Origin: Entomortierella parvispora E1425
Lineage: Eukaryota; Fungi; Mortierellomycota
Assembly (NCBI GenBank): GCA_020891255.1
Contig: BQFW01000012.1
Coordinates: 2,480,001-2,544,000, forward strand
Length of the DNA: 64,000 bases
Reading direction: 5' to 3'
Positions within the stretch are counted from its first letter, which is position 1. Each line of letters opens with the position of its first letter. Shown here piece by piece: positions 8,861 through 29,151 of the stretch. The notes under the pieces were generated by a model. That model saw only the letters and a list, made by a program, of their open reading frames with translations, was not told the DNA's origin and searched no databases. The position numbers and the translations under genes are program-made.

Positions 8861-11016
8861 GTGAGATGGCAGCTTGATGAGTTGAGTGAGGGAGTGAAGT
8901 GAAGTGAGGGTTGCTCCTGAAAAAAAAATAGTTCGATGAGGTGTGGTCTGATCGCAAGTGTTGATGGACCTGCATTTTTGTTTGTTCCACAAGACAGAGA
9001 GACAAGGAAGATCATATCAATATTGGTGTTTGGAGAGGCCATGGTACATGGAGTTAGCATGGCACGGTCAATGGTCGGGGAGGAGGCAACGAACCGAAAG
9101 AAAGAGAGTTGGGTCTAGTCGTTAGAAACTGGCAAGGAATGAGAGAGTGGGCAGCACAGAAGCACTGCGACCAGCAAGCGATCGACGCACGAAGCAGGAA
9201 TGGGGGGTTGTGAAAAAAAAAAAGTCTGAAGAGTGAAGAAAAGAAACGAAAACAGAGATGAGTCTTGAGAAAAACAGACAAAAAAACGGCGGTTGGTCGG
9301 AGACTGCATTGATAAACGTGGTTTGCGGTCAGACAATTGTATGCATCGATGGCGATCTCTGCAACGAGGATGAGTAACCGTCAATGTATGGGGCGAGGAA
9401 GGATGTGTGGAATGGAGAATGAAATTATTTTTTTCAGCTCGAATGGCCCGGCGAATTGACCGGTGGTTGGTTGGTGTCTCTGTTGCAGTGTCTCGAAATG
9501 ACCCTGAAATGGCTGGCTGCGTGCGAAGGATTGAATCGATCGACTAAATCGATCGACTATAACAAACAGCACGGACATCCTTCAACAGATTATCAAGGCG
9601 ATATAATCGCGCCATAGAATGCGTCTTGGCAACCGCCTCCTCCAGAAAAACAGAAAACACAGAAGGCGTGGGAGTGTTTACTGCACTTCCTGATGAGGCA
9701 ATTGCCATCCTTGTTCCCACGAAGACAAAAAAAAAAGGAATGCGTCAATATCCAAGCCAGATAACACCATTCGTACAAAACGTTGACCATCGCCGCCATT
9801 CCGCAACCTCTTCTTCCTCCTCATGGGCGCGATCTTGTAGGTTCTTTGACGGGTGCTAAAACCACCCTTCGGACAATTCGCCTCAGACAGACAGACACAC
9901 CCACACACACACAGCAGAACAGCCACACATTCCAACACTTTCGGGATAAAAATAATTTTTTTCCCAAGGAGATTCAAAATTGAATCTCAAACTTGTCAAT
10001 TCACTGCCCTTTCCCAGCTCTCCATCGTGGAAAAAAAGCCCCTTTTCCCAATTCAGCGGCCGCGATTCCAACAGCAGGTTTCCATGAGATCTTCGTTCTC
10101 GCTGTGTGCTTGCTGTCTGTGGTTTGTTGCTGGTCGCTTTAACTCTCTCTGCTGGCTGTGATTTTTTTTTCTCTCTTTACTTTGTCACCTCATCTAGGAC
10201 CAGTCGCAGCGCAGTTTTTGGCCTTGCCTTCCGTCGATCCACATTGCAACTGGCGGAAATCGAAAAACTCTCTATCTCGCGTAATTTCTTTATCCCATTT
10301 TTGTTCGCCTTTTTGAGGGTTTGTGGCCCTTCGTTGTTCCTGAAGAATCGTACTGTCGCCAAGGAAAAAAAAACAATTCCCTTTTTGTTCATTTCCACCC
10401 CCGCGTTTTAGTATGTGCACCCACCAAGCTCTCTGGTAGGCTGGCACCATTTTCATCTCCACGTTTCCCCCTCCTTTCCCTTTTTCCTTCCCGGCGGCGG
10501 ATGCCTATTCGTTTGTTGCGTTCGCAGTTTGTTTTTTCTCAGTCAGGGTTTTCTGGGCCTAGTTGTTTATAGTAAGTCGATCGATTGCACCCTTTTTCTC
10601 CTGCTTTTTCCCTTTTTTTTTTTTTTTTTTTGCATGAACTTCAAAAACCGATTTGCCAATTGAATGTCCATGCGCACGTTTTTTTATATTTCTTTTGAAT
10701 AGATGGATGTCTAATATACACTATGTAAAGGATGATGAAGATGCTTTTTTTACCCCTTCCCTTTTTGTGTGTTTTGCGTGTGTGTATCATAAGCCCTAGG
10801 CCTGGGCGGGGTGTGGGGGGTCATAGGAGAGGCCGAAAAAACAACCGGGGTGTATCGTTAAATCATTACTTTTGGGGATGGGAGGGGACATTTTTCGAAA
10901 AAGAAGCAAATCGCGATGTGCAAGAAAAAGAAAAAAATAAAATAAAATAAAGAAAAAAAAACTGCTGTGGGCAAGAAGAGGAGAGTCTTGTCCCACACTT
11001 TCTTGCAAGAAAAAGT

Positions 11017-13128
11017 CTACCAGACTTTAGCTGAAGAAGGAGTTGGTTGAGAATGAAGGGGAGTGGAGGAGTGAGGCGAGGAATGAGCGGCAGAAGAAGG
11101 TGAGTTCAGAGACCTTTTGTTCACCCATCGACTCTTGGCCTTGGGAAGGATCTCGGCCAGGCGTCTAGAGTGCTTTCCAGCCGAGCTCTGAAAGTTGTGG
11201 ACGAGCGATTGGAAGCGATCTTTCCATTTCTGACCATCGACATCTTCCCACAGTTCTGGGTTCGCGTCTTTAATCGCCAGTTTGGATTTGCCGCCGTGAT
11301 GAGGATGATGTGGGTGACGGTTGCTTTCGGGTGTAAACTGTGTAGGGCTGCTTTGATACTTTCTCAATAAAGACGAGCCTCGTTGCAGGATGCTGTTGGC
11401 TGTATGGCTTTGGTGACCACTCTTTAGATTCACTGCTGCCGCAGCCGTGGCCGATTGCCAAAACTTTTGAGTGGCAGTCGTTTCAAAGTTGCCGGCCCTT
11501 GAGCAAAGGGTCGAGTGGCCTGAGAAAGTCGGCGGGAAGGTGGGGCTGCAAAGCGTTGAAGTGAGCGAAAACGCGCCTGGGGACATGGGTGAACGCGGGG
11601 ACAAGAGAGAATCAGCAGCCTCGTGTTGCTGCTGTTGCTGGCGCAGGAACTGCTGGTGCTCCTTTTGCAGCTTGCTACCCTTGCCAGGACGTCTGCGGGT
11701 CCAGTTGGCATGCCAGGCCCGCCAGTCGACATCGCTGTCCACAGCGGTGGTTGGGGTTGTGGGGCTTGCGATGCCAGTCGGACTGCGACCCTCCTCATGA
11801 TTGGCCTGAGGAATAGGGTGGAAGGCTTTCTCTGAGCAAGGCGACGATGGAGAAGAAGCAGGAGAGCATTGGTCTTTTGCAATTTCCAAACGTTCCAAGT
11901 TCCATTGAAGAGGTAAGATGGGCATTGAAGTTGAAGTATAGGGTTCCTTCTCGGTTCTTGTGGTGCCCAAGGGGCTGTGTAAAGTCGATGGGCTACGGTC
12001 CATCGCGCTATCAGGGCCACCACCGATCATTAATGGTGAGATCGCGTTTGAGGCAAAAAGTGTGGAGAGGATAGATGTCCTGCGGTTGACCAAAAAGGAG
12101 GGTCGTCGCATTTGTGTTTCAATCGCCCAGAGGCGCTGCGACAGTCCCTCCATGGAAGAGAGTGCATGAGGGGAAATAGGTGAGGAAAGGGCCGAGTTAA
12201 CAGAGGAACATGTAGGAGAGGGTAGAGAGGAAGAAGGACTACCTCGATGGGCCGGCAGGGAGGAGGACCGTTCGCTGGAACAGGGAGAAGGTGGACTGTC
12301 GCTACTGTTGTCCGTGGTGATGTGGTGTTGGAAGAGTGCTAGACCAGGAGGGATCGCCCAGTTTCGTTTTGCGCTCTGTTCTTGCTTTTGGATGTCTTCT
12401 GGCGCGATGGCTTCTGCTGTTACTGCTGAGGCTGATGGTTCTTTTGATGTCATCGCAGTAGATGGGGTGGATGCTGTGGATTCTGTGGATGTGATAAAGC
12501 TATGTTCAAGTGGGGAGATTGACTGTACAGGGGAGGAGGAGGAAGAGACGACTGTGATCGAAGAAGAAGAGGGAGAGGGTCTAGTGTTGGGTGGCGAAGG
12601 GAACAGGCTCAGCAAGAAGTCGCTATTCATGGTCGAGACGATCTCCTCCTTCACTTTGGAGATATCGAACTTTGCCTGATCGAGCGTTCTCGGTGACAAG
12701 ACCGTGCCCAGATCTGATACTGATTCCGATGCTGCAACGGAAGGAATTTGGATACAGAGAGTTCCTGCTGAAGAACGCCAATCTTGAACATGCTCAGGCA
12801 CATCTTTGTCTAACGTATCCTTCATGACGTCTGTGAAGGCACTATCGACCAAGTCGCAGAGGTGACGCACATTGGCCTCTAGCGAGGTTTGTGATGAAGA
12901 GACCAATGGCTGATATGAGAAGGGAGAAGAAGGTGTAGAAGCGAATGCTGAGAGAGGGTGAAGAAAGAGTGGTGAATCTGTTTTGCGAGGGCCAAAGGTC
13001 AATGGGAGGAATTGTGGTCTGGAGGCGATGTTGAGCGGTGCGACTGGTTGTGATGAGAATGTGCGTGTGGAGATGCTTCTGGAGAGGGAGCCGGTGGGCT
13101 TTGAGAATTGAGTGGTGGTGACGTCCAT
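11017..13128 (-). CDS. Hypothetical Ser/Pro-rich low-complexity protein (about 703 aa)
   Basis: Long uninterrupted ORF. Probable start MDVTTTQ at 13128, preceded by a pyrimidine-rich leader. No domain recognised. Confidence 0.7.
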   Translation of the reverse strand: MDVTTTQFSKPTGSLSRSISTRTFSSQPVAPLNIASRPQFLPLTFGPRKTDSPLFLHPLSAFASTPSSPFSYQPLVSSSQTSLEANVRHLCDLVDSAFTDVMKDTLDKDVPEHVQDWRSSAGTLCIQIPSVAASESVSDLGTVLSPRTLDQAKFDISKVKEEIVSTMNSDFLLSLFPSPPNTRPSPSSSSITVVSSSSSPVQSISPLEHSFITSTESTASTPSTAMTSKEPSASAVTAEAIAPEDIQKQEQSAKRNWAIPPGLALFQHHITTDNSSDSPPSPCSSERSSSLPAHRGSPSSSLPSPTCSSVNSALSSPISPHALSSMEGLSQRLWAIETQMRRPSFLVNRRTSILSTLFASNAISPLMIGGGPDSAMDRSPSTLHSPLGTTRTEKEPYTSTSMPILPLQWNLERLEIAKDQCSPASSPSSPCSEKAFHPIPQANHEEGRSPTGIASPTTPTTAVDSDVDWRAWHANWTRRRPGKGSKLQKEHQQFLRQQQQQHEAADSLLSPRSPMSPGAFSLTSTLCSPTFPPTFSGHSTLCSRAGNFETTATQKFWQSATAAAAVNLKSGHQSHTANSILQRGSSLLRKYQSSPTQFTPESNRHPHHPHHGGKSKLAIKDANPELWEDVDGQKWKDRFQSLVHNFQSSAGKHSRRLAEILPKAKSRWVNKRSLNSPSSAAHSSPHSSTPLHSQPTPSSAKVW

Positions 13129-15342
13129 GGTGGTGATCGATGAGAGAGTGCAAGAAGAAGAAGAAGTCGGAAGCAAGTCAAAGGACAATGAAGTATCAAG
13201 AAGAGAGAGAAGAGAGGAGAAGCAAGAAGAAAGAAATGAACGCAAAAGACGGGAGAGAAGAAAAAGACGCGTGGGTGGAGGAGGGCACAGACGGCCCCAG
13301 TTTGCGAGCTTTTGGGTTAATATTGGAACTGTTGCGGAGAGCCTCAGTACACTGTCGAGCAAGTCCTCTTGGAACCTGCACGACCTCCTCGTCCTGAGGG
13401 TTATGTAAACGACGTTGTGCAAGTCTCAAAGGAACCCCCTTCCCCCTCTATCCTGACATCTCTCTATTTCCCAATCTCGCTCTCTTGAGCCCCTTCTCTT
13501 TTTTATTATTTTTCTTTCAGTTCTATTCGGACGAACGAGGAGAATTTGTAAAAATAAAAACGACTGTGGAGCCAGTCAGAGTGAGTTGTCTGCTACAAAG
13601 TAGAGGCAAGGGTGAACGGACAGGAGGGAGCGAGCGAGCGAGACACACACGCACACACTCAAAGAGAGACAGAGAGAATGAGAAGGAGAGGAGAGGAGAG
13701 ATGGCAAAAAAGAAGGGTCATTTGTATCGAACGGGAAGAGGAGGTAGTCTAACTGTTCAACGAGGAGACCGCCTCACCGCCGTCGTGAGGCTCATGTTGA
13801 GCCAGAGAACAACAAAGGAATCCAGGGCAAAAGAATGGCCTTCCCGCGTGAATTACATGAAAAACGGGGGGACGTCGAGGGGCTGGTGAATACCGTTGCG
13901 GACAGTGGACGCCCTTTTCTGCTCCCTAAACGACGCGTTTGACGCGAACGTCAACCCTGCTTTTTTTTTTCTTATATATTTATAAACGAGCCAGGTCGGC
14001 GAAAAAAAAGATGCGCAATGCATGGGGGGGGGGGGGGATGAGGAACCAAGGCGGCAAGAAAAAAGAAGGCAGCAAGGAAATAAGACAAGACAAAGAAGAA
14101 GGTGTCAAGGATCAACGATGAGACAAAACAAGGAGAACCATTGAGGATTGAGCCGACGCGGGGTCACGCACAGCCTGCAAAAGAGTGCAGCAGGACTGGG
14201 CTGGCAGCTGTCGCAACATGTACGACTTTGTTCTTTGTCCAGGAAACACAAGTGTGTTTGTTCGGGAGTTTGTGCGGAAATGGGGGGGCGAGAGGGTGAA
14301 GGACGGGGCGTTGCGTGCGCATGTCTGTCTGCATGTGTAAGAGAGACAAGACAGACAAAAGACAAAAAGACAGAAGGACACGAAGAGAGACAGACAGACA
14401 TGCCCCAGGGAGACACCAGGCAGGGCACAGCTGCAGACTGGCCCTTTATCTCTTCAACACCAGCAGCATGCATGGCCCCAAAAGGATCAACTCCAACCAC
14501 TGCCGAAGAGGGCAGGGCAAGGCGGATCGTGTGAGAGGAGCACGACGGGCAGCGCAGCACGACAGACGGAGCAGCAAGACAGACAGAGTAGCAAGACAGA
14601 CAGACAGAGAGACAGAGGACCATGACGACAAGATAAAAAAAAAGAAAGACCGAGTCCAGGTCCCGGGCCACCGACAGGGACGACGATCGACCCACACACG
14701 AATTATCGGACAAAATACAATTATTGCAATGATAAATAAGAATGAGTCGCCATGCTCATTCATGGCTCATGGTTCTAGGCCAGCCACGCCCAGCGCACCA
14801 CTCACTCGACGCATTCTGTCGGTCGGGGGAACAAGGGTCCTTTCTTCCTTCTGGCTGCAACGTGCCAAAGGGTGTCCATCCATCACTTCTCATTCATCTT
14901 TCATTCTTCCTCCTCTTGCTCTTCCTCTTCCTCTTGTCATTCCTCTCCTGCATGCTTACTTCCAGCCAGGATTCCCGCTCTTGATCCGCCTGTTTTCCTT
15001 TTTGTTTCATTGAATCAGTTTGTTTTATTTATTTTTTATTTCTTTTTTGTCACGTCCCCTTCCCTTTCCCTCCTCATCTGCATTGCACTCATTCACTTCC
15101 ATCCGTCCATCCATCCATCCATCTATCCGTCTTTCTATTGCATTCACGCCCCTCCTCCTCACTCTCATTCGTTCATTCATTCATTGGCATCGCAAAAAGA
15201 GACCTCACGACTCCTTTATTTTCTTCATTGTTCCTGCAGTCCCTTCTTATCTCTCCTCCATCGTTTTCGCGTCAAACGGAGGAGTTCCACATCCCTCCCT
15301 CCTTCCCTCATATAGATCTCGCCTCCTTCTCGCCTCAGAACA

Positions 15343-18300
15343 ATGTCGAGTAAGTTACATTTCTTCTCCATCACCACCCACGCGCGCGCATTCGCATCCA
15401 TTTAGAATGCTGGACACAGCACTTTTTGTTCCTGGCCCTTGCCCCTCACCCCCGGCTCTCTCTGTCGTACACACACACACGCACAGAATAAATTACGCCA
15501 ATCGCAACGACACTCTTGCTATGCCACCCCCGGGAACCAACACAAAGACAGGACAGGACAGGACAGGACATGACAGGATAGGATAGCGCAGCACAGCAGT
15601 CGATAGACAAGACCTGCTAGTACTGCCTGGGATTAGATCAGCCTGGCTTAATCGAGGTTGGGTTGGGTTGGATTGAACTAGACTTGGACTGGGTGAACGC
15701 AAGGCCATGCGTCCTGAATCCCTGGGTCGCTCGAGCTGTCTGTGCGAGAGGGTCCTCTGTAGAGATCCTGCTCCTCCGGCCAAAGTGCCCTTGGTCTCCC
15801 CGCATCCCTCGTCTCCTGCCCAAGCCCGCCTTACTCGTCCTTTGCAGTGCACAGCCATTCATCCTTTCACGGTGTCCATCTAATTTGGGCTTTTTTTTTT
15901 TGTTTTTTTTGCCTTTGCTCTGGTCCAAAACGTTTTTTTCCCTTGGGCCTATTTTTATCTACCCCAATGCCCCCGAAGCAATCTTGTCAAATCGCCCATA
16001 TGATTTGAATTTCATTTCAGTCCCTCTTTGGCAGATCTGTGCCCATTGCTCCAACATCAAAGACAGGCAAACAACAACACAACAACAACAACAACGACAA
16101 CAACTGCGAGAGCAATTGCCGGCTCTCCAGACGGCCATTTATCCAATTCTTTGTTCCTGCTCTCACTCAACACTCATTCGCACTCACTCACTCACCCACA
16201 TTCGTCCTTCCGTTGCACGCGCCTCTTAGATGACTGGAGACGACAAAAGGTCCAGGACCACAAGTTTGACTTTATTGATGTGGAAGACTACGTCGACAAC
16301 TCGCCCTGGCGCAAGTTCAAGTACTCTCTAGTGTTTGCCATTGTCATCAAAGGCATCCTTATTTACTGTGCCGATTTGTGGTATGCCATCATTCGCAGAC
16401 AAGTCAACTATGGAGTGAACTACATCAGCAACAGCGTTTCTTAACCCAATCTTGTCTCTGCCCCGCGCCTCTGCTCTTATCCTCTTTTAGGACGGCCGTC
16501 AACTTGTTAGTCTCTGGTAACTGGACCACCAAACTTGGAGTAGAAGGAGGAAACATTGCCCTCGGTAAGTTCATGTTTCCTGTGACGCCACCAATTTGTC
16601 CAGTCGTCAGCATCGATCAAGCTAACGTTTGTCGCCCCTTTGCTTTACCATAGGCGAGTTCAAAATAACGTTCGCGATTTACAAGGTACAGCATGGAGAA
16701 ATGGCAACAGAAGAAGACCGAATGACCGTTCTGCTACTGTACTCACACAACTTGTCTTTGTGCTGTCTCTAGTATATTTTCTCTGCTTGTATTATCTTGT
16801 CGTTCATTCTTCTGGCTTGGGATATTAAGAAGGCAACGGCCATTATTCAGAGTCGCGACATCAGTTATGCCTTCACCAGTATGATCGCATACCGGTACTA
16901 CGCCATCAAGAGTTACGCCCATTTCTGTCTTTTCCAGAAGATCCACAACTCCAAAAAGACAATCGATGAGATCGCATTCTTTTGTTTCTTTACTTTCAGA
17001 GGTATACATTGGTTCTCTTATTTTTCGCCACTTTAATTTCAAGAGACCCATGATTATTAACACGTCCTGTTTGTATCTTTCAGGTTGGAAGCGACTGCTG
17101 TTTGCCGATGGTCCCAGACAGGTTATCAACGGAATCATCTTGATTACTGTGATCAAGGGTAGCACTCAGAACAACAACGGATTCAGTTTGGCGTTCTGGA
17201 ACTACGGCTACAACACCATGACATCCATTACCATGGGACTCATGATGTTCACATTGACTCTCTGGGTCATCTCTGTCCTGCTCATGATCGTTGCTGTCGT
17301 CCTCTATATCCCGTTGGTTATTCACATTCAGGGTAACTTGAAAGAGTTTTGCTGTCACAAAATCGACAAGCGGTAAGTCCTCGCTCTTTGGGTTGCCCTC
17401 TACTCCAATTGACCAAAGAAAAAAAAAAAAAAAAAAAAGAGAACAAACATGTTGAACATTATCTGTTTTTCCCCTTGATTATTAGAATTGACGAGATTGT
17501 CAAGCGAAAGGCAAAGCAACGTGCTCAGGAATCGGCCAAGAAGGGCGGTGGCGGAGAGAACCTTCCCAAGGCAACACTCCCCAACATTAATCTCTTGGAA
17601 GAGGGACGCAGTTCTCCTGGACCAGGTGCGACTCCTCGCCTGGGAGCCAAGAGCCCGTATATGGCCCCTGGATCGCCTGCAATTCGCAAGGCAGGCTTGC
17701 CAGCACCCAACGATCCTTATCGCCGCCAACATCCCCAACCTCCTCGGCCGTACTCTCCCAGCCCTCGCTCCTATACCCCTTCTTTGGACGATGATGGTGA
17801 TACAAAGCCATTGAGACAGGACAACCATGCTCAACACTACCATAACCGAAACTTGCGTCGACAGGACCAAATGTACGACTATGACGACACTCGGAGTGAG
17901 GTCAGTGAAGGCGCCTACTCTGCCGGTGGTGGATATTTGGCATCCCAGGCTGGACCCCCCAAGCCTCAGGTACATGGACACGGGCACGGTCACGGTCACG
18001 GACACGGACACGGACACAGGAGGCAACCATCAGATACAAGCACGGTGCTCAGTGGGTCAAATCAAGGCAGTGTCGTTAGTGGATATGGACCTCGTCATGG
18101 TGGCAAACCTCATCCCTTGCGCGAGGCTGGCCTCGGACAAGGTAGTCAGTACTCTGACACAGTTATGATGACAGACATGAGTGGTCATCATCGTGGAGTC
18201 GCTCCACCTTATACCAACAATGGATATCACGGACCGCCCACTGGATTGGGTGGTGGATTGGGCCACAACATGGGAGGCAGTGTTGTCGGCGGAGGAAGCG

Positions 18301-18374
18301 TAGTGAGTGGACCTAGCTATGCGGATCAACAACGAGGACGGTACCAGCAGCAGCCCTCACGTCCTTACCACTAA
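15343..18374 (+). CDS. KCH1: Fungal Kch-family (Kch1/Kch2-Prm6-like) potassium transporter/channel with a disordered C-terminal tail (about 556 aa)
   Basis: Exons 15343-15349, 16230-16380, 16491-16564, 16654-16685, 16773-17001, 17084-17372 and 17486-18374, all phase-consistent. Motifs include WRRQKVQDHKFDFIDVEDY, WRKFKYSLVF, IKSYAHFCLF, GWKRLLFADGPRQVING and GNLKEFCCHKIDKRIDEIV. The symbol is family-level and the first exon is inferred. Confidence 0.85.
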
Positions 18375-19136
18375 AAAACAAAAATCATCGAATGGTTAAT
18401 TAAAAGAGAAAAAAAAAACAAAAACTCGGAAAACAGCATTCACTAAAAACCCCTGGCCTGGTATGGTTATTGGATGCAGGTTGTGGGGCAATTACACATT
18501 CTGGAGGCCTGGTAGTTACACCAGAAGGCGACAGCTCACGGTCCAGCCCCACTTTTCCTCACATTCAGCATTTCAAAAAGGGCCTCAGTCTTGGGGTGCC
18601 GAGATGTTCAGCCCTAGGGTTTCCCATGCAAAGACAGGGAATCCCAAGTGTCAATCTACCCTTACCCTGACCCACAGCATTCTTGGGCTTTATAGGTAAC
18701 AAAACCCACCTATAGAGAATGCATTCCATTGAGGGTAAAGCATAGCGACTGTTCGGAATCGGGGAGGATGGAGAGACGACGTTTTTCCCCTTTTGTGCGA
18801 GGGGGGAAAAGGAGGTCCAAGAAGACAAAAAAAAATAAGCGATCTCGCTTGGAGGACAAGATATCTATTTGTATTCCAATGTGGCCTACCAAGCTCGTTC
18901 CATCGTTCTGTTTGCTGTTGAATTGTTGATGCCGATGCCAACCTAACGCTGGGACAAACATAACTCTCTCTCTCTCTCGGACCCAACAAGAGGCACGCGC
19001 AGCGCGCGCGCGCGCTCGTAGATATTCTTTCTGAGGCCGAATGGTGCTGCATGTGGGTCATATTTGTCTGTGCGGGAAGAGGGATGTGGTGGAGACACCA
19101 AAAGAAAACCGTGGTACGTGCAGATCAGAAAGCCCA

Positions 19137-19143
19137 TATAAAG
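19137..19143 (+). promoter_or_regulatory. Putative TATA box of the DHSHH-repeat gene
   Basis: TATAAAG lies about 240 nt upstream of the ATG and is followed by a CT-rich leader. A (GC)7 run sits at 19002-19015. Confidence 0.5.
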
Positions 19144-19378
19144 CAGAGCGAGTCTGCCCCCTTAGTTCATGATATTTTTTTCTCTTTTTCCTTCTCTCTG
19201 CTCTTCTCTCTCTGATCTCTTTCTTCACGCGCACTTCTTCTCCCTCTACGTCTCTCAGGAACGACTGTTTTCTTCGCTCCCTTCCATCTTCACGCGACAT
19301 TTTAAGCCCTTCCTTCACAGAAAGAAAGATCTATTCAGGAACTCTCAACTTCCTTACATCTCCTCTCCGTCTATAAAC

Positions 19379-20704
19379 ATGCGCTTCATTCTCTCTGTTC
19401 TCTTGGCTACGGCCCTTGTTGGCGCCATGGCGACCGCTGATGTTCAGCATGGTCAGCAGGTTGCCTTCCGCTTGGAGCCCCGCCACCAAAAGAAGAATGA
19501 CAACTCTCACCACCAGAAGCAGCAGGCCAACAAGAAGGAACGTCGCGACTTGCAGGATCCCTTGATCGCCGCTAATGTCCCCGTTCCCGTTGAAGCGCCC
19601 ATTGTGGCTGCTGCCCCCATTGAGGACGTCTCCAAGCCCACCGTCTTGGCCCCTCAAGAGGCTGCCCCCATTGTCGCTGCGCAGATTGCCACCCCCGAGA
19701 CCATTGTGGACAAGAAGATCTCCAACTTTGGATTCCATCACCGTATCTCGCGTCAGGGTCGCAAGACCAACCGTCACAGGAAGGTTGACCACTCCCACCA
19801 CCAGCAGCAGCTGAGCGCGGATGGTAAGGACCACTCCCACCATCAGCAGCAGCAGCTGAGCGTGGACGGTAAGGACCACTCCCACCACCAGCAGCAGCTG
19901 AGCGCGGACCGTAAGGACCACTCCCATCATCAGCAGCAGCTGAGCGCGGACGGTAAGGACCACTCCCACCACCAGCTGCAGCAGAGCCAGAACAAGCAGG
20001 CGGATGGTAAGGACCACTCCCACCACCAGTTGCAGCGGAACCAGAACAAGCAGGCGGACGGTAAGGACCACTCCCACCACCAGTTGCAGTGGAACCAGAA
20101 CAAGCAGGCGGATGGTAAGGACCACTCCCACCACCAGCTGCAGCAGAACCAGAACAAGCAGGCGGACGGCAAGGACCATTCCCACCACCAACTGCAGCAG
20201 AACCAGAACAAGCAGGCGGACGGCAAGGACCACTCCCACCACCAACTGCAGCAGAACCAGAACAAGCAGGCGGACGGTAAGGACCACTCCCACCACCAGC
20301 TGCAGCAGAACCAGAACAAGCAGGTGGACGACCATAAGGACCACTCCCACCACCAGCTACAGCAGAACCAGAACAAGCAGGCGGACGGCAAGGACCACTC
20401 CCACCACCAGCTGCAGCAGAACCAGAACAAGAAGGTCGATCACTCGCACCATCAGCCCCAGACCAAGCGCGCTTTGGCTCTTCACCGCAAGAAGGACCAC
20501 TCTCACCACAAGAAGCAGTCTGGCTCTTGCCAGCACAAGAAGCGTGCCTTGAAGTTGCACCGCAAGAAGGTCGATCACTCTCACCACAAGAAGCAGTCTG
20601 GTTCTTGCCAGCACGAGAAGCGTGTTATCAAATTGCACCGCAAGAAGGCTAACTCTCACCACAAGAAGGCTGAACACTCGCATCACAAGAAGGCCGAGAA
20701 CTAA
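19379..20704 (+). CDS. Secreted His/Gln/Lys-rich tandem-repeat protein (441 aa) with 16 DHSHH repeats; candidate peptide precursor
   Basis: ATG at 19379 in an AAAC-ATG context, with a hydrophobic signal-like N-terminus MRFILSVLLATALVGAMATA. Intronless, strongly C/G-ending codons, and TATAAA at 19137-19142. Confidence 0.9.
   Translation: MRFILSVLLATALVGAMATADVQHGQQVAFRLEPRHQKKNDNSHHQKQQANKKERRDLQDPLIAANVPVPVEAPIVAAAPIEDVSKPTVLAPQEAAPIVAAQIATPETIVDKKISNFGFHHRISRQGRKTNRHRKVDHSHHQQQLSADGKDHSHHQQQQLSVDGKDHSHHQQQLSADRKDHSHHQQQLSADGKDHSHHQLQQSQNKQADGKDHSHHQLQRNQNKQADGKDHSHHQLQWNQNKQADGKDHSHHQLQQNQNKQADGKDHSHHQLQQNQNKQADGKDHSHHQLQQNQNKQADGKDHSHHQLQQNQNKQVDDHKDHSHHQLQQNQNKQADGKDHSHHQLQQNQNKKVDHSHHQPQTKRALALHRKKDHSHHKKQSGSCQHKKRALKLHRKKVDHSHHKKQSGSCQHEKRVIKLHRKKANSHHKKAEHSHHKKAEN
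19787..20460 (+). repeat. Coding tandem repeat: four 42-45 nt units followed by about nine mostly 54-nt units (GACCACTCCCACCACCAG...)
   Basis: Near-identical units are directly visible. They encode DHSHHQQQLSADGK and DHSHHQLQQNQNKQADGK. Confidence 0.97.
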
Positions 20705-21106
20705 AAAAAGTTCCTGTCTTGTCGTGTAAAAAGAAGAAAAAAAAAAAAAGGCCTTCAACACGCCCGATACCCCAGTTGATTCATTCCAACCAACATTGAA
20801 AAAAAAACAAGCACCCCTCAAAAAAAAAAAAAAAAAAAAAAGACCAAACTCATTTTGTAATAGAAGCGCTAGGCAGATCAGTCTTTTCTCTCCATCTGTA
20901 AATAATAAACCCGATCCTTGGCGTCCTTCTCCAACAAAGGTATATGTTCAGTCTTTTCCTGTTCGAGGTGGTTGCTTTTCTGAAAGACCATTGATCGAGA
21001 AGACGCCACCAATTTATGGTTGAGGTCACGTGCTAGTTTGACTATAATCTTGTGGCTGATTCGGCGCAGGGGGTTCTTCCTTTCTCTCGCTTCAGATTTA
21101 TTCACT

Positions 21107-22725
21107 ATGGTATTAAGGGGGACATTGCAGCTGAGCTTGGACAGGATGTGCCCAGCCCCAAGGACCCATGGTCCATCGATCCATCAATCTCAACAGGAGT
21201 GGCATCAACCCGACGTATCCATCATCCATCATCCTCCGTCTTGCAGGGAGGCTATTGTCGAAAAATACCGAGAGAAAAGGATCTTGATCGCATTCATTTC
21301 AGCAGACATGGATGAGCATGGACGAAAAAACTCTTCAATTCAGACACCAATGTCAAAAACAGAGGCATCATGAGGGACCTCTGATCCCATCCCCAAACCC
21401 GGAATGCAAACATACAAATATACCAGTCAACGTTATACCAGGATCGACATCTCTAGTGCTACAGGATTTCAATCGCAGGAAGGAAAAGCAGAAATGCAAG
21501 GCGAAACTTTCATCAACCTGTCTGCGATGAATCCATCATCAAATCTCAACACTCCCCAACAGCAACTGCAGAGAGCTCCATGAGGACCCTTATCTTTGAC
21601 CAGCATACACTGGAGGCCAACCACAGAAAGAGGGCACTTGGGAGTTCAACAAGCTCTTATATGACAAGGTCGCTAACAGGACCTTTCGTTTTCTCTTCTA
21701 ATAGCGCACTCCTACTTTCCAGCGTGTCGTCGAGGTTGGCCGTGTCGTCATGGTCAACTATGGCCCCGATGCCGGCAAGCTCGCCGTCATTGTCGATATC
21801 ATTGACCACAACCGCGTATGTTGTCCTACCTTGCTATCATTTTTTCTTTCTTCAGCACTATTTTACACAAGGACACCGGAAGTGCCTTCTACGCTGGAGC
21901 AGGAAAACTGAACAATACTCGGGAGAGACTATTCGCCTGTGGAACCTTTGACTGACATCAGATCTGATGAGAGAGATCTATTCTGGAGGGATGGAGTGGG
22001 ATGGATGTGATCTGATCCTGTTTTCAGCGACATCGACAGGATCTAGATTGCTTTAGAGCTTTTACAGATTCATGGGAAAGGAGATCAGCCAATCGTCTGA
22101 GAGACAACTTCCAGACTGATTTGTGAGCATCCAAGTTGATGCTAGAGATGTCTTTTCCATGTACTGTTTTTCTGGACCCTGACAGCCATATGGACCAGCA
22201 CAATCCTGAAAACTATCTCAGGATCTCAGGAAACCAAAGGACTTTTTCAACTGCAGAAGAGACATCGATATCTGACCGAACGCCGCATTCTTTTCTAATA
22301 GGCTCTCGTTGAGGGTCCCACCACCGGCATTGCCCGCGGTGCCTACGCTTTCCGTCGCTTGACTTTGACCCCCTTGGTCGTCAAGGTTCCCCGCAACGCT
22401 GGCCAGACCGTCCTTAAGGCTGCCATTGAGAAGCAGGACCTCGCTGGCTCCTGGGCCAAGACTTCCTGGGCCAAGAAGATCCAGTCCCGTGCCACCCGCG
22501 CTTCCAACACTGACTTTGACCGCTTCAAGCTCATGAAGTACAAGAAGCTCGTAAGTCAAATTTTTAATATCTTGCCATTTTTGATATGGAATTAACAGCA
22601 ACTGGGAGCCTGGGAAGATGCCAATGCTCGTTCGATCATTTGGACTAACCAACCTTTTGCCTTTTTTTTCTTCTCTACAGCGCCGCGAGATTGTCAACAA
22701 GGCCGTCAAGACCATCAAGGCTTAA
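21107..22725 (+). CDS. RPL14: 60S ribosomal protein L14 (eL14)
   Basis: Secure exons 21705-21815 ([37 protein letters not shown]), 22302-22550 (ALVEGP...DFDRFKLM) and 22681-22725. The start codon is inferred at 21107-21109 (ATG|GTATTA); an alternative is ATG at 21016. Confidence 0.95.
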
Positions 22726-24321
22726 ATGTCTTTTTGATTCGAAAACGGAACCATGTCGACAAAATGTCAGCAAAGAAAAAAATAAAGCATTGTGATGGAT
22801 CGTATTCAATCACTCTTGTTACAAAAAAAAATAGATACTCAGGATGAATAGCCTTGTCAGTCTCAGGAACCAATCTCTCCCAATTCTTTTTCTTTGAGAA
22901 AGAAGACTCGATCGCTTCTTTGACAACATGGATGCGGCCTTGACAACTATTTTTTTTTAACGAGCAGAACTCTTTACCAAGGCGATCAGTCGGTGTGTTT
23001 TTTGCAGTGCGCGCCAGTTTCATCTTGGTAGCCTTGTTCTATCCTCTATGATGTAAATTCCTCCGATTGGTTGTAGAAAAACACGGGCAAGTGAGATAGT
23101 CCAAGCGCCAGGCCAAAGAAACCGATTTCCTCAAGTAAGAAGCAAGGTACTCTCCAGCACAGGAGAGAGAGTCCACAGAGGTGATCATATTGCTGCCCTC
23201 AACGTGACTGAACAGCCGCTGTACCATCCACTTTACCGAAAAAAGTCTTACACAGGGCTGCTCGTGCCCCCCACAACGCTGCCAAGAATGTCTGCCTGAG
23301 ATCAGGAATGGAGCCGGTTGTCATTGGGTGCATGGATGTCTATCCAACTCTCGGCCCAAGATACGGAGCGAGGGTTGCGCTTTGTGCTCTATATATCTTT
23401 ATACCATAATTCTTGTGTCTCGGCTTGAGGAGGCACCCATCGGTCCGTGCCAACTATCCCGGCTGGCAATGAATGACATGCAACAAGAAGAAAAAAAAAG
23501 TTCGACTGGACGGTCCTGAACAATCGAAAAAATGTCATGGGATCAACAGACCAACGGCTCCTCCCTCCCCAACTTTCATTTTACAAGTGGGGGCCTTAGA
23601 TGTTCTATGAGGCCACAAGACATGGGCGTAAAGGCTAGGACACAAAGGGAGTTGAGAAACAGAGCGGTCCCTTTTGTAATGCAAGAGTCCATTGGAAGGG
23701 AGGAAAGCGCTCTCTCATAAGGTTTTCTCATCATGCGATCACAAACCCATTCAACAGGGCACTCTGTTGGATGGTTTGTTCGTCGTACAGTCAAAAGAGC
23801 AATAACTTTTTCCTTCCTCCCTCCCTCTCTCTGCGGCGCAGGGGGAGGAGCGGACAACTGGGAAAGGAAGATTGCGTGGTGTGGGGCCAAGATGAAAAGG
23901 AGCACTTTTCCGGATTTCGGATTTTCAAACGACGACCAGGCCCGAGTGTGGGGTAGAAAGTCTGTTCTCAACAACGTCAAGGGTTCATTCATTTTGAAGG
24001 GAGCTGTTCCTTCTCATGATCGTTTTCATTTGGATGTGGGGTTCTTTTTTTTTTATTCGTTTCTAGTTTCTATTCACAGAACAGGAAGAGAAGGAATCTG
24101 GAAGGAGAGAGAGACGAGCTTGGAGGACAGGGGGGACAGAACCGACACTGGTCCTTGCCCTTTTCCTTTTGTCACTCGGGGGTTTCGTTTTTGGACAGGG
24201 GGGGTTTTTTTCGTTATATACAAAGGGTTGGAGAGTGGAGAGAAGAGGAGAGAAGAAGGGTTCCTGTCTGCGACATGGGGAGGAAAAAAGGGAACACCAG
24301 AATGTAGGCGAAGTTGTATCT

Positions 24322-24798
24322 TTACGCCTTCTTGAGCTGTTCAGCCTTTTCCTTGCGCTCCTGCCAGAACTCCTTGTTGGGCGACCAGAGCTATGGAAGA
24401 GTGGAGGGAGACAAACAAGAGTTAGGAAGAGAAAGAAATGGCGCTTTAAGGAAAGGCCTGGGGAAAGGGTACGTTGCGTGTTCTTGTTGCTGTTGCCTCT
24501 TTTTTTTTACCTTGGCGTTCTCGTGGGGCTGGATGCGTTGCCATGGCTTTTGAGGAGCAGACTTGTTGATAATGACATCGGGTCCGTTGGCCAAGCAGTG
24601 GCCGATATAACTAGAATGGTGTGTCCAAAGGTGAAAGGAGAGTGTGTGAGTACTCTTCTTGTCTCGTGAGGGCTCGGAGGTTGTGAAGACCCAAAGTTCC
24701 TGGACTTACGCAATGCCTCCGACGATACCTCCGCCTCCAAAGAGGAAGAGAGGAGCGAGAGCAGGGTTAGCCTTGACGAGAGAGATGACGCCGGACAT
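24322..24798 (-). CDS. NDUFA4/MLRQ (B12D)-family small mitochondrial membrane subunit, 85 aa
   Basis: Exons 24798-24710, 24610-24511 and 24390-24322 join to give MSGVISLVKANPALAPLFLFGGGGIVGGIAYIGHCLANGPDVIINKSAPQKPWQRIQPHENAKLWSPNKEFWQERKEKAEQLKKA. The P-L-x-PLF, single TM, PDV and PW pattern fits the MLRQ family. Confidence 0.82.
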
Positions 24799-25799
24799 GA
24801 TTGTGTTTGTTTTAAGAGTGGAGAGGAAGAGGAAAGGGGAGAGCAAAGAGTGGTTGTGTTGAGGATTGAAGAGAAGAAGAAGAAGAAAGAAAAAAAAAAG
24901 GAGAACAAAGCGCCATTGCTGTCTCCTTTTATACCAACGCAAGTAGGCCATGGGCCGAAGGAGCAAGAGTGGGAGCGTGTGCAAAAAACAAAAAACAAAA
25001 GAGGACGCCTCCCCACAAGGTGGGGAACAGTGGAGAGTTGTAACAAACAAGAGGAGAGTAGGGTGCCATTGGACGTTGGTCTAGTACGACCGTGCCAGTT
25101 ATGAATGTTGGTGGGTCTATCGGCCAAGTCCATCTGCCTGTCGAGGCCATTGACGTGTCCACTAGCAGACGCAGACAGTGGACTAGGTTCTTTGGCCCTG
25201 CAGGGAAGGAGAGGGAAAGAAAGAGAGGACGAGAGCCAGTCAGGGATTGTGACCAGCCGACAGGGCAAAGGAAGGATAGGATGCGCGCTTGATTGCACTT
25301 TGCTGCTGGGATGCCAATCGGTGCTCTCTCTCCCTCTCTTTTTTTCATGTCATTATTGTCTTTATCGATTTTGCCTTTGTACATCATCTATTAACTCACA
25401 CGTAAAGAACCAGGGAGGAAGGGGCGGAGCCAGGCACAAGAAACAGGGTCTCTCGGTTCCACCACTCCATGACGACGATCGAGATATAGATAGACAAGAC
25501 ATGACCAGACTGGGCAGACTCGCACCCATCCACACGCGTGTCCCTAGACTCAAAAGTCCGCCCAGGCACAGACAGACAGACACCACCAGGCACAGACATA
25601 GACACAGAGCGACAGGTGGACAGGTGGACAGGCAGAGACAGACAAGCCAAGACGGGCAAAGAGGATGTGAGCGCAACTCTTACTAGCGGAGACCCAAGTG
25701 AGTCGACAGGATGACAGAGAAGAGTGAAGAAAGAAGAGCGAAGAGACGAAAGAGAAGAAAAGAGAGGACGGAGAGTGGATGCACACGGACAGATAGACA

Positions 25800-25831
<32 letters not shown>

Positions 25832-26076
25832 CAGACAGAGAGAGAGAGAGAGCAACCACGGCATCAACCAACTGCAGCCAATCTGCGCCAGAAAGAGAGC
25901 AAAGATGTCCACGTTCGTTCGTCTGTCCCCTCAACATCCAAGTCAAGTCAGCCAGGGGGGAACGAACGAACGAACGAACGGACCTCTGTTTGTTTGTTCA
26001 CCTTTCCACCTTGTCGCCTTCTCACCTCATCCTTCAGCTCTCTTGTCTTTCTACTTTCTTTGCCTCTCTCTCTTTC

Positions 26077-26114
<38 letters not shown>

Positions 26115-26410
26115 CTTCCTTCCTTCCTTCCCTCTTTCCTTCATCACCTTGCATCCCTCCATTCATTCATTCATTCACCCACCCACTCTCTCACCACACT
26201 CACTCACTCTCCCACTGATTGAATTCAGTGTCCTCTCTCCCCTGCCCACACACCCCTTCCTCCCTTTGTCCCGCCGACCTATCGCCGCACTGTGCGGTCA
26301 ATCCTAATTTCCTTATTTCTTTTATTTCGTCTCCCTCCTCCTCCCTCCTCCTCCTTCCTCCTCCCCCCAACAATAATCTCTCCCTCATCCAATCCATTTG
26401 ATTCGTCGCC

Positions 26411-29151
26411 ATGATCAACACCATCGTGGCCCGTCTTATCCATGTCGTCATGTTCATCATTGCCGCAGGGGTAAGCCCGATTCGCACCACCCGACCGACA
26501 GCTCTCGGCCCTGCCCGCACGCCGTCTGTGCCACCCTCTCGATGCACTGGCAGCAAACGCAAAGTCAGGCACCAACGGACTAACTTTGTCGCCACTCATT
26601 CTTCCTTCTATTCATGTATCTCTTCTCGCTGTATAACTGTCTATCGTGTACATCGGTCCACCGGTCCATCTGCCTGTCTATCCGTCCATAGACCTGCGGC
26701 TGCATCGTTGCAGAGCTGAGTAGGTGTCTCTTCCTCTTTATCCCTTTCCGCCCTTTTCCCCTCGATCGTTTGATGCCCGTCAGGGCATGCCCATGATGCC
26801 ATCCATGGCTTTGAACGTGTGATGTCTTTTCCTTCCACGCTGACCTTCAATACTCCCCTTTCTCGCTCTCTCTCTCCCCCCGCGATCTTTCTCATTGCAG
26901 TCACGACAAAGAAGAATCAGGGCGGATACGACTACACATGGGCTACCTACTACCTCCTCACTGTCAGTAAGTACTGCCCAACCTTTTTTAACTCAATGGA
27001 ATCCTCGGTCAAGGACGGCGGATGGCTGAATAGAGTTGCACGCTCGATAAGAGCATCGGGACCAGAAGACCAAAAGAGAGCACCACAGCATCCCCGCGCC
27101 CCCCCTGGGTACACTATCTTACAGTAGAGCACCTGGGCTTTTCCATACTCGTTCGAGCAAGAACGGCCGTTGCAGGCCTCATTTCACATGGGTTCCCGAC
27201 ACCGCAGAGACCGTGGCTGCTGACTATCCGAGAAAGTCAAGGAATGAAGGGAAAAACGCACGCACACAACGCTCAAACCCCTGCTGTTCCCGCGTTTGCC
27301 TCTCCCTTTGCGCCCTGGGCTTTGCTTTTTTTAGATTCAAGAAAACAAAAAGGCCTTTTTTTTAAAACTCTTCGCCCTTTGCCCTGGCACCCACGCTAAC
27401 ACGCCCTTCTCTTCATCCCTGAAAACAGCCTCCATTGGGGCTTTGCAGACCCTGCTTTGGATCTTCCAGTCTAGGATATACGAGAATGGTCGCCCGTCGG
27501 TCCAGGAATGTGTCTTTAATGGCGTCCTCACCCTGTTGCTCGGATTCGCGTTCGCCTGGCAGTTGTACCAGACCCTGGCCAATTCTTCCCCGTTGCCCTT
27601 TCTGTGCAGTACCGATTCCTTTGACATGACGATACGCTGCCGATTGTGGCAGTCTGGGCTCGTAGGATGTGGTGTCAGTGCGTTGATGTACTTTGCAATG
27701 ACCATTTTCTGCATCATTCTCTTCCGAAGCCGGCCCCTTGTTCTGAAAGAGCTCCCTGAAGATTTCATCTTGAGCACCCCTGCGACAGTGTCGGCCGCCA
27801 TCGCGAAACAGGATGCAGACCAGCGGGAACGCGATCGAAAGGAGGCGGAGGCAGAGCAACGATCCATGCAGGATCGACAGGCGCAACAGCAGAGACAGTT
27901 CTCTCAGCGTCCTATCATGCAATCTAGACCAAGCAACCAGTACATGCTCCAGCATCAACAGTCGCAGCAGCCAATGTTGCCCCAGAGCGCCCGTAGTAAT
28001 ACAGGCCAACTCAGGAGTCAGAACTCGGGATATAATCTTGGCCAGGACCCCTACGTAAGCGAGAATCTTTTTACTCTCCCTTTGTCCATGGGTTGTTTCA
28101 CGCGCGTTCTCTAACCCCTCCCCTTTCTCCTCTTCTGACCCATCACCTCCCTTTGTTGTCTCTACAATGTTAAACTACCTAGCAACGAGTCCCCGTCCAA
28201 AGCAACTATTCAGATACCACGGGCGAATCTTACTACAACGAAAGTTACGCTTTCCAGCAGCAGTCGCCCTACGACGCTGCATACCAGCACCCCAATGCCG
28301 CTCGATCAACCTCGCCTTTGGCCATGAACGGATATGGTGCCGACGCCTCTGCTGGATATATGGAAGCCCCCGGCACCTCCAATGGTCAATATACCGGTTA
28401 TGGAGACTATGCTTACGGACACTTTAACCCTGCCGAGACATTTGATGACCCGACATCTCAGGAGGCTCAGGCCCATTTGGCCTACGCAAATCAATTGAAG
28501 GAGCAACAGCTGTACCATCAGAATATGGCCGATGTTCTGACCAAGCAGCAGCAGCAGAGACAGCAATCGAGGATGCAACAGCAACAGCGCCAAAACTCAA
28601 AGCAGGAGGATGAGTTGCAGCAGCCACCTCAGCGATTCCCTCCCGCCTCAGGATCAACTGCCAGTCTTTACACACCACCCCCCTCCACCGGCGCTCAGAA
28701 CAACTCTATCATCCCACCCTTGCCTGTTCGTGCTTCTACCTCAAGTTCAAACGGACGACCTGAAGTAGAACAACAACATCAGCAGCAGTATGGAGCAAGC
28801 ACTTCTGTGAATGCTCTTACAGGCATGATGACCCCTCCCTCCAACTTTAGCAGTTCTCGAATTGCAGGAAGTCCCCAACTGTATTCGGATCAGCTCACAG
28901 TGGCGGAATCCCATTACTCGGATGATCGGCACAAGGAGAACCTGTTGGGCGATCTCAGAAGGAATCGAGGCGGGAACGATGCTGATGGTGCTCAAGACTC
29001 TGAGGAAATGGAGAGCTTGCAGGGATACAAGGTTCCGCTTTCGCAGTACGGAGGAAACGCGGACCCAAGACATGCGGGATCGAGCAATAATCTTCGTCAT
29101 AACAGCTCAGGGTACACTCCTCCACCTCGCTCAAGTACTTCACGGTCTTAG
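26411..29151 (+). CDS. Four-TM MARVEL-like membrane protein with a long Gln-rich disordered tail (about 582 aa)
   Basis: Exons 26411-26470, 26692-26719, 26901-26966, 27429-28054 and 28183-29151 with consistent phases. Four hydrophobic helices lie in the first about 170 aa, with two Cys in the last loop. The family assignment is inferred from topology only. Confidence 0.72.

Follow-up and report, generated by a model that had tools for sequence, protein, structure and literature searches.

A predicted secreted precursor of Entomortierella parvispora with a recent DHSHH repeat array: an unnamed Mortierellaceae family and a candidate extracellular metal binder

What use might a fungus have for a protein that repeats the pentapeptide DHSHH sixteen times? 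The question is raised by a gene in a 64,000-nt stretch of contig BQFW01000012.1 of Entomortierella parvispora E1425 (Mortierellaceae; assembly GCA_020891255.1), hereafter the window, within which all coordinates are positions unless another locus is named. An intact open reading frame (ORF) of 441 codons runs along the + strand from its ATG at 19379 to a stop codon at 20702-20704, and a gene with the identical 441-residue product is already annotated on the contig. The initial annotation, made from the letters of the DNA, had taken this product for a secreted metal-chelating polymer or a multi-peptide precursor. The answer put forward here, part by part, is that of a predicted precursor from an unnamed family, the central array of which may bind metal ions outside the cell. 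The parts of the gene, each with the evidence by which it was delimited, are the following.

19379..20704, + strand: complete single-exon coding sequence, 441 residues plus stop (ORF reading and annotated gene)
19379..19432, + strand: predicted signal peptide, residues 1-18 (hydrophobic run and AxA pattern)
19433..19546, + strand: conserved propeptide, residues 19-56, ending in a family-invariant RR (alignment)
19547..19786, + strand: Ala/Pro/Val-rich spacer and then the KISNFGFHHRISRQGRK box, residues 57-136 (sequence reading)
19787..20437, + strand: DHSHH array, residues 137-353 (repeat periods of 42 and 54 nt, and the list of units)
20438..20701, + strand: basic tail, residues 354-441 (78-nt repeat and predicted KR/RR fragments)
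20471-20545, 20546-20623 and 20624-20701, + strand: three KR-delimited tail peptides of 25-26 residues, type ALKLHRKKVDHSHHKKQSGSCQHE

The locus is a genuine gene. Its product contains 66 His, 72 Gln, 52 Lys and 25 Asn residues, and DHSHH occurs in it exactly 16 times, with start residues from 137 to 399, accompanied by the variants DNSHH at residue 41, NSHH at 425 and EHSHH at 432; the motif and His counts of the initial annotation were exact on recount. The copies arose by tandem duplication and not by chance, since Tandem Repeats Finder reports arrays with units of 42 nt (4.7 copies, 19787-19987), 54 nt (9.0 copies with 92% matches, 19946-20435) and 78 nt (2.4 copies, 20483-20668). The G+C content of third codon positions (GC3) is 0.81 overall, 0.70 in the non-repeat N-terminus and 0.89 in the array, against 0.76 in the neighbouring ribosomal protein gene RPL14 and 0.27-0.68 in the remaining long ORFs of the window, such that the preference for C/G-ending codons noted earlier is borne out. 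A GGTAAG look-alike of a splice donor occurs seven times in the coding sequence, but no RNA joint lies within the gene, and splicing inside the repeats was rejected.

To what family does the protein belong? Word-indexed searches returned seven relatives, which share 63-73% identity with it over its first 60 residues. With a profile built from the first 63 aligned positions, 25 representatives were then found among 1.84 billion proteins, 22 of them with E <1e-9, and a further profile added three partial ones; the matches span E values from 8.5e-33 to about 1e-7. The two weakest and non-fungal-looking matches, P0025 and P0026, in which only 20 residues align, were discarded as noise. All named members are Mortierellaceae entries described as 'hypothetical protein', drawn from Dissophora, Podila, Mortierella, Linnemannia, Gamsiella, Entomortierella (beljakovae and lignicola), Haplosporangium, Lunasporangiospora and Modicella, and several genomes hold two or three paralogues. 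As judged from these profiles, therefore, the DHSHH protein is a member of a family restricted to the Mortierellaceae. The initial annotation had recognised no family; one exists, yet it is unnamed and confined to these fungi, and no paper on it was found in the literature.

The family proteins are of 180-441 residues, with isoelectric points (pI) of 9.6-11.4 and 4.6-17.5% His, and they share a layout of signal peptide, propeptide with an invariant RR, an optional Ala/Pro/Val spacer, and KR-delimited peptides rich in His, Lys and Ser. The signal peptide, with the pattern MRFILS..LLATAL, is about 70% identical across the family. In the DHSHH protein it reads by eye as MR, a hydrophobic run and AMA/ATA, with predicted cleavage after AMA18 or alternatively ATA20, and AlphaFold2 models residues 2-19 as a helix, all of which agrees with the signal-peptide-like N-terminus described previously. 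The propeptide, of about 37-38 residues, follows the pattern GQQ.aFRLEPRH ... DNSHH ... KKERR, and its invariant columns with those of the dibasic site are G25, Q27, F30, L32, E33, R35, H44, R55 and R56. The dibasic sites reported earlier are likewise in place, KKERR at residues 52-56 and RK-type sites at about 127-134, with the Ala/Pro/Val spacer between them; Linnemannia zychae, M. claussenii and Mortierella sp. GBA43 have a comparable spacer, and a KISNFG[LF]HH box is common to the DHSHH protein and the Podila proteins P0009 and P0031. In the pro-region the usual form among the relatives is K[VA]DHSHH, against NDNSHH in the DHSHH protein, and the motif therefore appears, by alignment, to be ancestral to the family.

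Downstream of the leader the family sequences diverge almost completely, and what remains is a shared grammar of units, namely KR, xLxLHRKK, 12-20 residues rich in His, Lys and Ser, and then the next KR, which defines peptides of 20-27 residues. Across 18 relatives 43 such KR-delimited units were extracted, often with a single Cys, then His, near the end. The three tail units of the DHSHH protein fit this type and have near-identical counterparts in Podila minutissima P0031 (ALELHRKNHSHHNKASGSCSHE). In other respects the protein stands apart, being the longest in the family, with 16 copies of DHSHH against a maximum of 7 elsewhere and 16.3% Gln against a maximum of 9.4% in the other members.

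This layout has a counterpart in the KEX2-processed repeat proteins (KEPs), for which Le Marquer et al. 2019 (PMC6339444) gave a definition and Umemura 2020 (PMC7329392) a survey. By that definition a KEP has a signal peptide, at least three internal repeats making up at least 15% of the length, and KR, RR or KK between them (PMC6339444). The family layout fits these published pipeline criteria and its architecture, at the level of sequence, matches that of KEPs; neither Mortierella nor Mortierellaceae is mentioned in the main texts of the two papers. The DHSHH protein itself has the signal peptide, with its AxA leader, model helix and family conservation, and has at least three repeats over at least 15% of its length, the array accounting for 49% of the 441 residues and the three tail units for 17%. 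It differs from KEPs in that KR, RR or KK separates the three tail units and is absent from the 13-14 central ones, such that most of the repeat mass would be left unreleased. Indeed, the array interior contains neither KR nor RR, and since 13 central units end in GK, RK, HK or KKV they would stay on one chain. Of the linker units, 10 of 13 end in GK, in line with the earlier description.

Cutting in silico at KR and RR gives a 37-residue propeptide, a 308-residue central product and peptides of 25, 26 and, at the C-terminus, 26 residues. The idea of a Kex2 multi-peptide precursor thus holds in part, in that the family layout, the RR and the 43 KR units speak for it, and fails for the 13 central units with their uncut GK, RK and HK ends. 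From these features we infer both secretion and a pattern of cleavage, in which the signal peptide would be removed, the propeptide cut off after RR56, and three C-terminal cationic peptides of 25-26 residues released at KR sites, leaving about 300 residues as one central chain. That chain would have come about when one DHSHH sub-unit lacking a KR site multiplied in tandem to about 14 copies, with Gln/Asn-rich linkers between them. Neighbours of the protein in the ESM Atlas include the alpha-factor and apidaecin multi-peptide precursors, which, with scores <0.8 and a structural template-modelling (TM) score <0.4, serve as leads only.

The array consists of four units of 14-15 residues (DHSHHQQQLSADGK type), nine of 18-19 residues (DHSHHQLQQNQNKQADGK type) and one shortened unit. 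The central chain has 26 acidic and 24 basic residues together with 40 His, and its calculated net charge rises from +0.4 at pH 7.5 to +18 at pH 6.3 and +38 at pH 5; that of the basic tail is +21 at pH 7.5. The mature protein is predicted to be intrinsically disordered, the AlphaFold2 model made with the family alignment having a mean predicted local distance difference test score (pLDDT) of 47, with the array below 50, coil elsewhere and the signal helix (residues 2-19, pLDDT 70-80) as the sole confident element, and the ESM Atlas model a pLDDT of 0.44. Neither a Pfam scan nor a PDB sequence search with the 441-residue protein gave any match at E up to 1. The further suggestion that the Gln/Asn linkers might drive self-assembly is not supported, in that Lys and Asp occur in the linkers and the whole model is coil.

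The array nevertheless has the marks of constraint. Compared with their consensus, seven 18-residue units contain 11 synonymous and 4 non-synonymous nucleotide differences or, counted as distinct events, 6 against 3; the sites number 9 and 45 respectively (binomial p = 0.001, or 0.025 if synonymous sites mutate at twice the rate). Since synonymous changes dominate among the copies, this comparison indicates purifying selection on both the DHSHH motif and the Gln/Asn linker, which argues against a neutral runaway repeat.

What, then, could be the function of such a chain? Human Ctr1 offers a chemical answer. The 14-residue N-terminal peptide of that transporter begins MDHSHH, where His3 completes an amino-terminal Cu(II)- and Ni(II)-binding (ATCUN) site and His5/His6 form a bis-His site for both Cu(I) and Cu(II), from which acidification releases copper. 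Residues 2-6 of Ctr1 are identical to DHSHH, and by this analogy the fungal motif is chemically a metal site, as the initial annotation had supposed. The likeness is limited to these five residues, the fungal motif being internal, present 16 times and unaccompanied by a transporter domain; the Ctr transmembrane domain is absent from the protein, in which no Pfam family is found at E up to 1 and no helix past the signal peptide. It is plausible by analogy, however short the match, that a segment of five residues with three imidazoles and a carboxylate, present 14 times along a flexible chain, would make a multivalent and exchangeable Cu/Zn/Ni site.

Other His-rich proteins bear on this point. 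Helicobacter pylori Hpn and Hpn-like, the latter rich in both His and Gln, and Plasmodium HRP2 are His-rich metal-binding repeat proteins, as is, with its GHHPH repeats, the histidine-rich glycoprotein of plasma. The DHSHH protein resembles all four in high His content, short tandem units, disorder and multivalent metal binding (in its own case a prediction), and Hpn-like also in the combination of His with Gln; it has no relation to them by sequence, and neither organism nor cellular location is shared, Hpn and Hpn-like being cytosolic and bacterial. The tail recalls another class, the histatins such as histatin 5, its KR products being likewise of 23-26 residues, polycationic, rich in His, Lys and Ser, and furnished with HxHH-type motifs, which bind Cu and Zn. 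Here too there is no homology by Pfam or PDB match, the precursor is fungal and multi-copy, and the resemblance is one of size and composition. A fungal precedent for a cationic His-rich stretch that is both metal-binding and antifungal is provided by the AA14 lytic polysaccharide monooxygenase (LPMO), whose disordered cationic His/Cys tail binds copper at micromolar affinity and inhibits fungal spores. There is no sign of a zincophore of the Pra1/Zps1/Asp f 2 kind, in that Pfam shows no HRXXH domain, the PDB search no match at E up to 1, and the model coil.

Taken together, we infer metal binding and a biological role by analogy, and place about half of our confidence in a DHSHH protein that acts as an extracellular, pH-switchable and multivalent binder or buffer of Cu, Zn or Ni, issued together with three histatin-like peptides. 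Under this proposal the central chain would carry no charge at neutral pH and a strong positive one below pH 6, acidification would release or switch the bound metal, and the small tail peptides would add a metal-dependent antimicrobial or metal-shuttling activity.

Support for export comes from an unexpected relative. P0022, a partial Mortierella alpina protein (KAF9555718.1), has the leader, the pro-region and an ALELQRK box, followed by 16-residue repeats of AGYGSTQTAG type, and is by its sequence the fungal ice-nucleating protein of Sci Adv 2026 (PMC12978214). Alignment of P0022 with the family by hhalign gives a probability of 98.5% (E 2.4e-15), and in a BLASTP comparison with family member P0008 its first 215 residues align over about 200 residues at E 5e-18. 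According to that paper, the MoINpro cloning primer encodes MRLFLS and the EnINpro primer MGTADV, the nucleator has a canonical signal peptide and a charged, His-containing, flexible N-terminal linker that is proposed to drive electrostatic multimerisation, and its activity is found cell-free in mycelial washes (PMC12978214). The Mortierellaceae nucleators MoINpro and EnINpro are thus like the family in their homologous signal peptide, pro-region and basic linker with ALELQRK box, and unlike the 441-residue protein in their 16-residue InaZ-type TxT/SLT/YGS beta-solenoid repeats, the place of which is taken there by His-rich repeats. As the leader cassette heads an ice nucleator that leaves the cell, export of the DHSHH protein is supported. 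Moreover, the bacterial-derived InaZ repeats seem, from the alignments, to have been joined on behind an export cassette native to the Mortierellaceae; a term search of the main text of PMC12978214 found no discussion of the origin of the N-terminal linker. The bolder combined proposal, in which the array is a protein-sized metallophore with 14 Ctr1-type sites and the family cassette was the native scaffold for the InaZ repeats, is one that we consider doubtful as a whole.

The age of the array can be read from its genomic position, for which the two neighbours of the gene are needed.

15343..18374, + strand: KCH-like gene, upstream neighbour (annotated gene; tblastx match to the E. beljakovae KCH gene in the corresponding position)
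21107..22725, + strand: ribosomal protein L14e gene (RPL14), downstream neighbour (annotated gene, RNA joints and translation check)

The order KCH-like gene, DHSHH gene, RPL14 and then a B12D gene in E. parvispora is found again in L. zychae, and that in E. beljakovae is ThrE, KCH, family member P0012 and RPL14, with tblastx placing the E. beljakovae KCH gene at 16193-17373 of the window and ThrE at 7229-8632. A location directly upstream of RPL14 is therefore common to the three species compared, E. parvispora, L. zychae and E. beljakovae (other members may be paralogues), and by synteny the DHSHH gene is the positional orthologue of a family locus between the KCH-like gene and RPL14. P0012 has seven KR-delimited LHRKK units and no DHSHH array, and because this positional orthologue comes from the same genus the array is, on this comparison, a recent novelty of the species or of the strain. 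Contigs from a second isolate that bears the E. parvispora label (X4, with about 90% identity over this region) run straight from 19739 into 20564 and turn back on themselves inside the 78-nt repeat, with a depth about three times that of single-copy sequence; this suggests that the Gln-rich array is absent or different there and that more KR-delimited units stand in its place; as these contigs collapse repeats, this is only a hint.

Some further observations belong to the locus. The L. zychae gene model FBU30_000699 (JAAAHV010000112.1), which fuses the His-rich gene to RPL14, is an annotation artefact, since the His-rich ORF of 273 residues has its own stop (L002 6822, within L002 6001-8861). 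The KCH-like gene's C-terminal portion, at 17349-18374 (+), encodes a (GH)8-type run (HGHGHGHGHGHGHGH) in a Pro/Gly/Ser-rich and probably disordered tail, about 1.5 kb from the DHSHH gene. DNA (X1) and RNA (X2) contigs of strain E1425 diverge at 19856 and 20439 into other His/Gln- or His/Pro-coding sequence, which points to at least one further expressed locus of comparable low complexity in another part of the genome. Several long A runs (up to about 23 A) lie at 20705-20845, just 3' of the DHSHH gene, and the strain's DNA contigs seem to be cut at 20724-20852; this flank may bear on assembly quality or on polyadenylation.

Is the gene used? The initial annotation had expected high expression and had pointed to a TATA box, which as sequence is present in two versions.

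19137..19142, + strand: TATAAA hexamer, 237 nt before the ATG (sequence reading)
19372-19377, + strand: second TATA-like hexamer, immediately before the ATG (sequence reading)

The region of the first is not conserved in the upstream alignment with L. zychae and E. beljakovae, which contains no conserved block among the three orthologous regions, and no transcription start of the gene is defined by RNA contigs of the strain. Expression was read from a single RNA-seq library (X2) of strain E1425, taken from the same sample as the genome reads; its source is 7-day endobacterium-cured mycelium on half-strength CMMY medium. Spliced messages are captured in it, as shown by GT..AG joints in RPL14 at 21815/22302 and 22550/22681, and the depth of RPL14 exon contigs is 10,000-29,000, with about 250 for the upstream gene and a background of 10.3 in the RPL14 intron and 15.6 in the intergenic sequence before RPL14. 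In this same region, between 21700 and 22560, DNA and RNA contigs of the strain also contain a second RPL14-like sequence that differs at about 6-7 positions per 110 nt, has an intron of its own (393 other letters between 21821 and 22297) and reaches an RNA depth of several thousand-fold; it is probably a second, active RPL14 paralogue elsewhere in the genome.

A number of results weigh against a working metal-binding protein. The DHSHH gene is at or near background in this one condition, with contigs at 19588-19816 (depth 3.5) and 20295-20389 (depth 9.9), an overall range of 0-10, and no contig over the unique 5' part, 19085-19555 (depth 0). The expectation of high expression is thus contradicted by depths far below those of RPL14 in the one library, contig depth being a crude measure and one condition being unable to prove that a gene is never used. 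Coverage is no higher than the intron and intergenic background. A search of RNA runs with the sequence of the gene itself listed no run; one with RPL14 brought up the E1425 library, which bears the label 'DNA?' yet contains spliced GT..AG joints. A Logan contig with P0017 was rejected as evidence of expression, having a genomic look with promoter present and no poly(A). Consensus sites for Zap1, Mac1, Ace1, Aft1, SreA and PacC are scattered single matches in the three orthologous upstream regions, none of them shared. A cation-efflux gene (CDF, PF01545) does lie beyond RPL14 in E. beljakovae (L003 9209-10804); the linkage was set aside as coincidental, as the gene occurs only near that locus and has no tblastx counterpart in the window. 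With neither a conserved metal-responsive element nor a transporter neighbour, the case for metal rests on chemistry and not on regulation. The chemistry itself carries a caveat in that the high-affinity site of Ctr1 needs a free N-terminus two residues before its His, which an internal DHSHH lacks unless it is cut out. Moreover, a His-rich composition by itself fits pH-dependent binding of polyanions or membranes equally well and cannot separate these from metal, and the literature search found no experiments on secretion, cleavage or metal binding for any family member.

Four other explanations must be set against metal binding. The protein might be purely a precursor of antimicrobial peptides, in which KR-delimited cationic His/Lys peptides act on competing microbes in the manner of histatins and the DHSHH/Gln array is a mere spacer or carrier produced by repeat slippage. 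The element conserved throughout the family is indeed the KR-delimited xLxLHRKK peptide and not the array, the relatives are strongly basic (pI as given above), repeats turn over fast between species as is typical of defence peptides, and both the apidaecin and alpha-factor neighbours, as leads, and the AA14 tail are in keeping with it. We nonetheless hold it to be unlikely, as purifying selection on motif and linker means that the array is no neutral spacer, and as the array, half of the whole protein, is neutral in charge at pH 7.5, in contrast to cationic antimicrobial peptides. Alternatively, a disordered and multivalent chain whose array swings from +0.4 to +38 between pH 7.5 and 5, with a tail of +21 at neutral pH, could be a pH-switchable polycation of the wall or matrix that binds acidic wall polymers or polyphosphate once its His residues are protonated, and so serves adhesion, wall cross-linking or surface conditioning, perhaps with metal cross-links as in the His-rich proteins of mussel byssus and worm jaw. 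The electrostatic multimerisation proposed for the related ice-nucleator linker would agree with this; still, the 441-residue sequence lacks a glycosylphosphatidylinositol (GPI) signal, a glycosylation stalk rich in Ser/Thr and any N-glycosylation sequon, the empty Pfam scan leaves it with no wall-anchoring domain, and the conserved KR and RR sites favour cleavage into small soluble products, such that a wall polycation seems quite improbable.

Secreted effectors that contain repeats are known from Glomeromycotina, SP7 being an example, and by analogy the KK/KR-rich units could be uptake or nuclear-localisation signals of an effector sent into a plant root, an alga or a bacterium. A protein that is predicted to be secreted, disordered, rich in repeats, restricted to one lineage and fast-evolving would suit such a role, and its near silence in axenic culture would fit induction only upon contact with a partner. 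Against this, Pfam and PDB sequence searches show no similarity to a known effector and the His-rich motif is conserved across saprotrophic genera, and we judge an effector to be very unlikely. The near silence can also be taken at face value, the gene being silent or decaying in this strain and the array a largely functionless runaway expansion of repeats, in accordance with the background RNA coverage, with the X4 contigs that jump from 19739 to 20564 as if the array were dispensable or absent in that isolate, and with repeat contents that differ completely between congeners. A decaying gene would not, however, be expected to keep a 441-codon frame intact across 650 nt of repeats, an excess of synonymous over non-synonymous changes of about tenfold per site, a strong codon bias, and a position and leader retained across at least nine genera, and only a slight probability attaches to this view.

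We return, therefore, to the exported metal binder and to what it would mean. Fungi in general are known to secrete precursors of repeat peptides, of which scarcely any from an early-diverging lineage has been given a function; none rich in His is known to have been described in the Mortierellaceae, which are abundant soil and root-associated fungi and also hosts of endobacteria. Against that background the E. parvispora member is an unusual variant in that half of it is a non-cleavable array of Ctr1-type motifs with Gln/Asn linkers. As payload it carries, in multivalent form, a copper-binding pentapeptide of well-understood chemistry, and a conserved export cassette whose payload has changed completely between congeners makes for a compact and testable case. 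The practical value is modest, and lies in a natural poly-His polymer that would bind metal and in a supply of histatin-like peptides. If metal is indeed bound and released according to pH, this would be a protein-based form of extracellular metal handling distinct from siderophores, zincophores and metallothioneins, in which a secreted, pH-releasable chain captures or buffers copper, or Zn or Ni, outside the hypha of E. parvispora. Likewise, if the second part of the combined proposal is right, the cassette of leader, propeptide and linker would be a reusable export module for repeat payloads in the Mortierellaceae, and the leader common to the ice nucleator would show by what means a bacterial repeat domain, acquired horizontally, came to have a fungal route of secretion.

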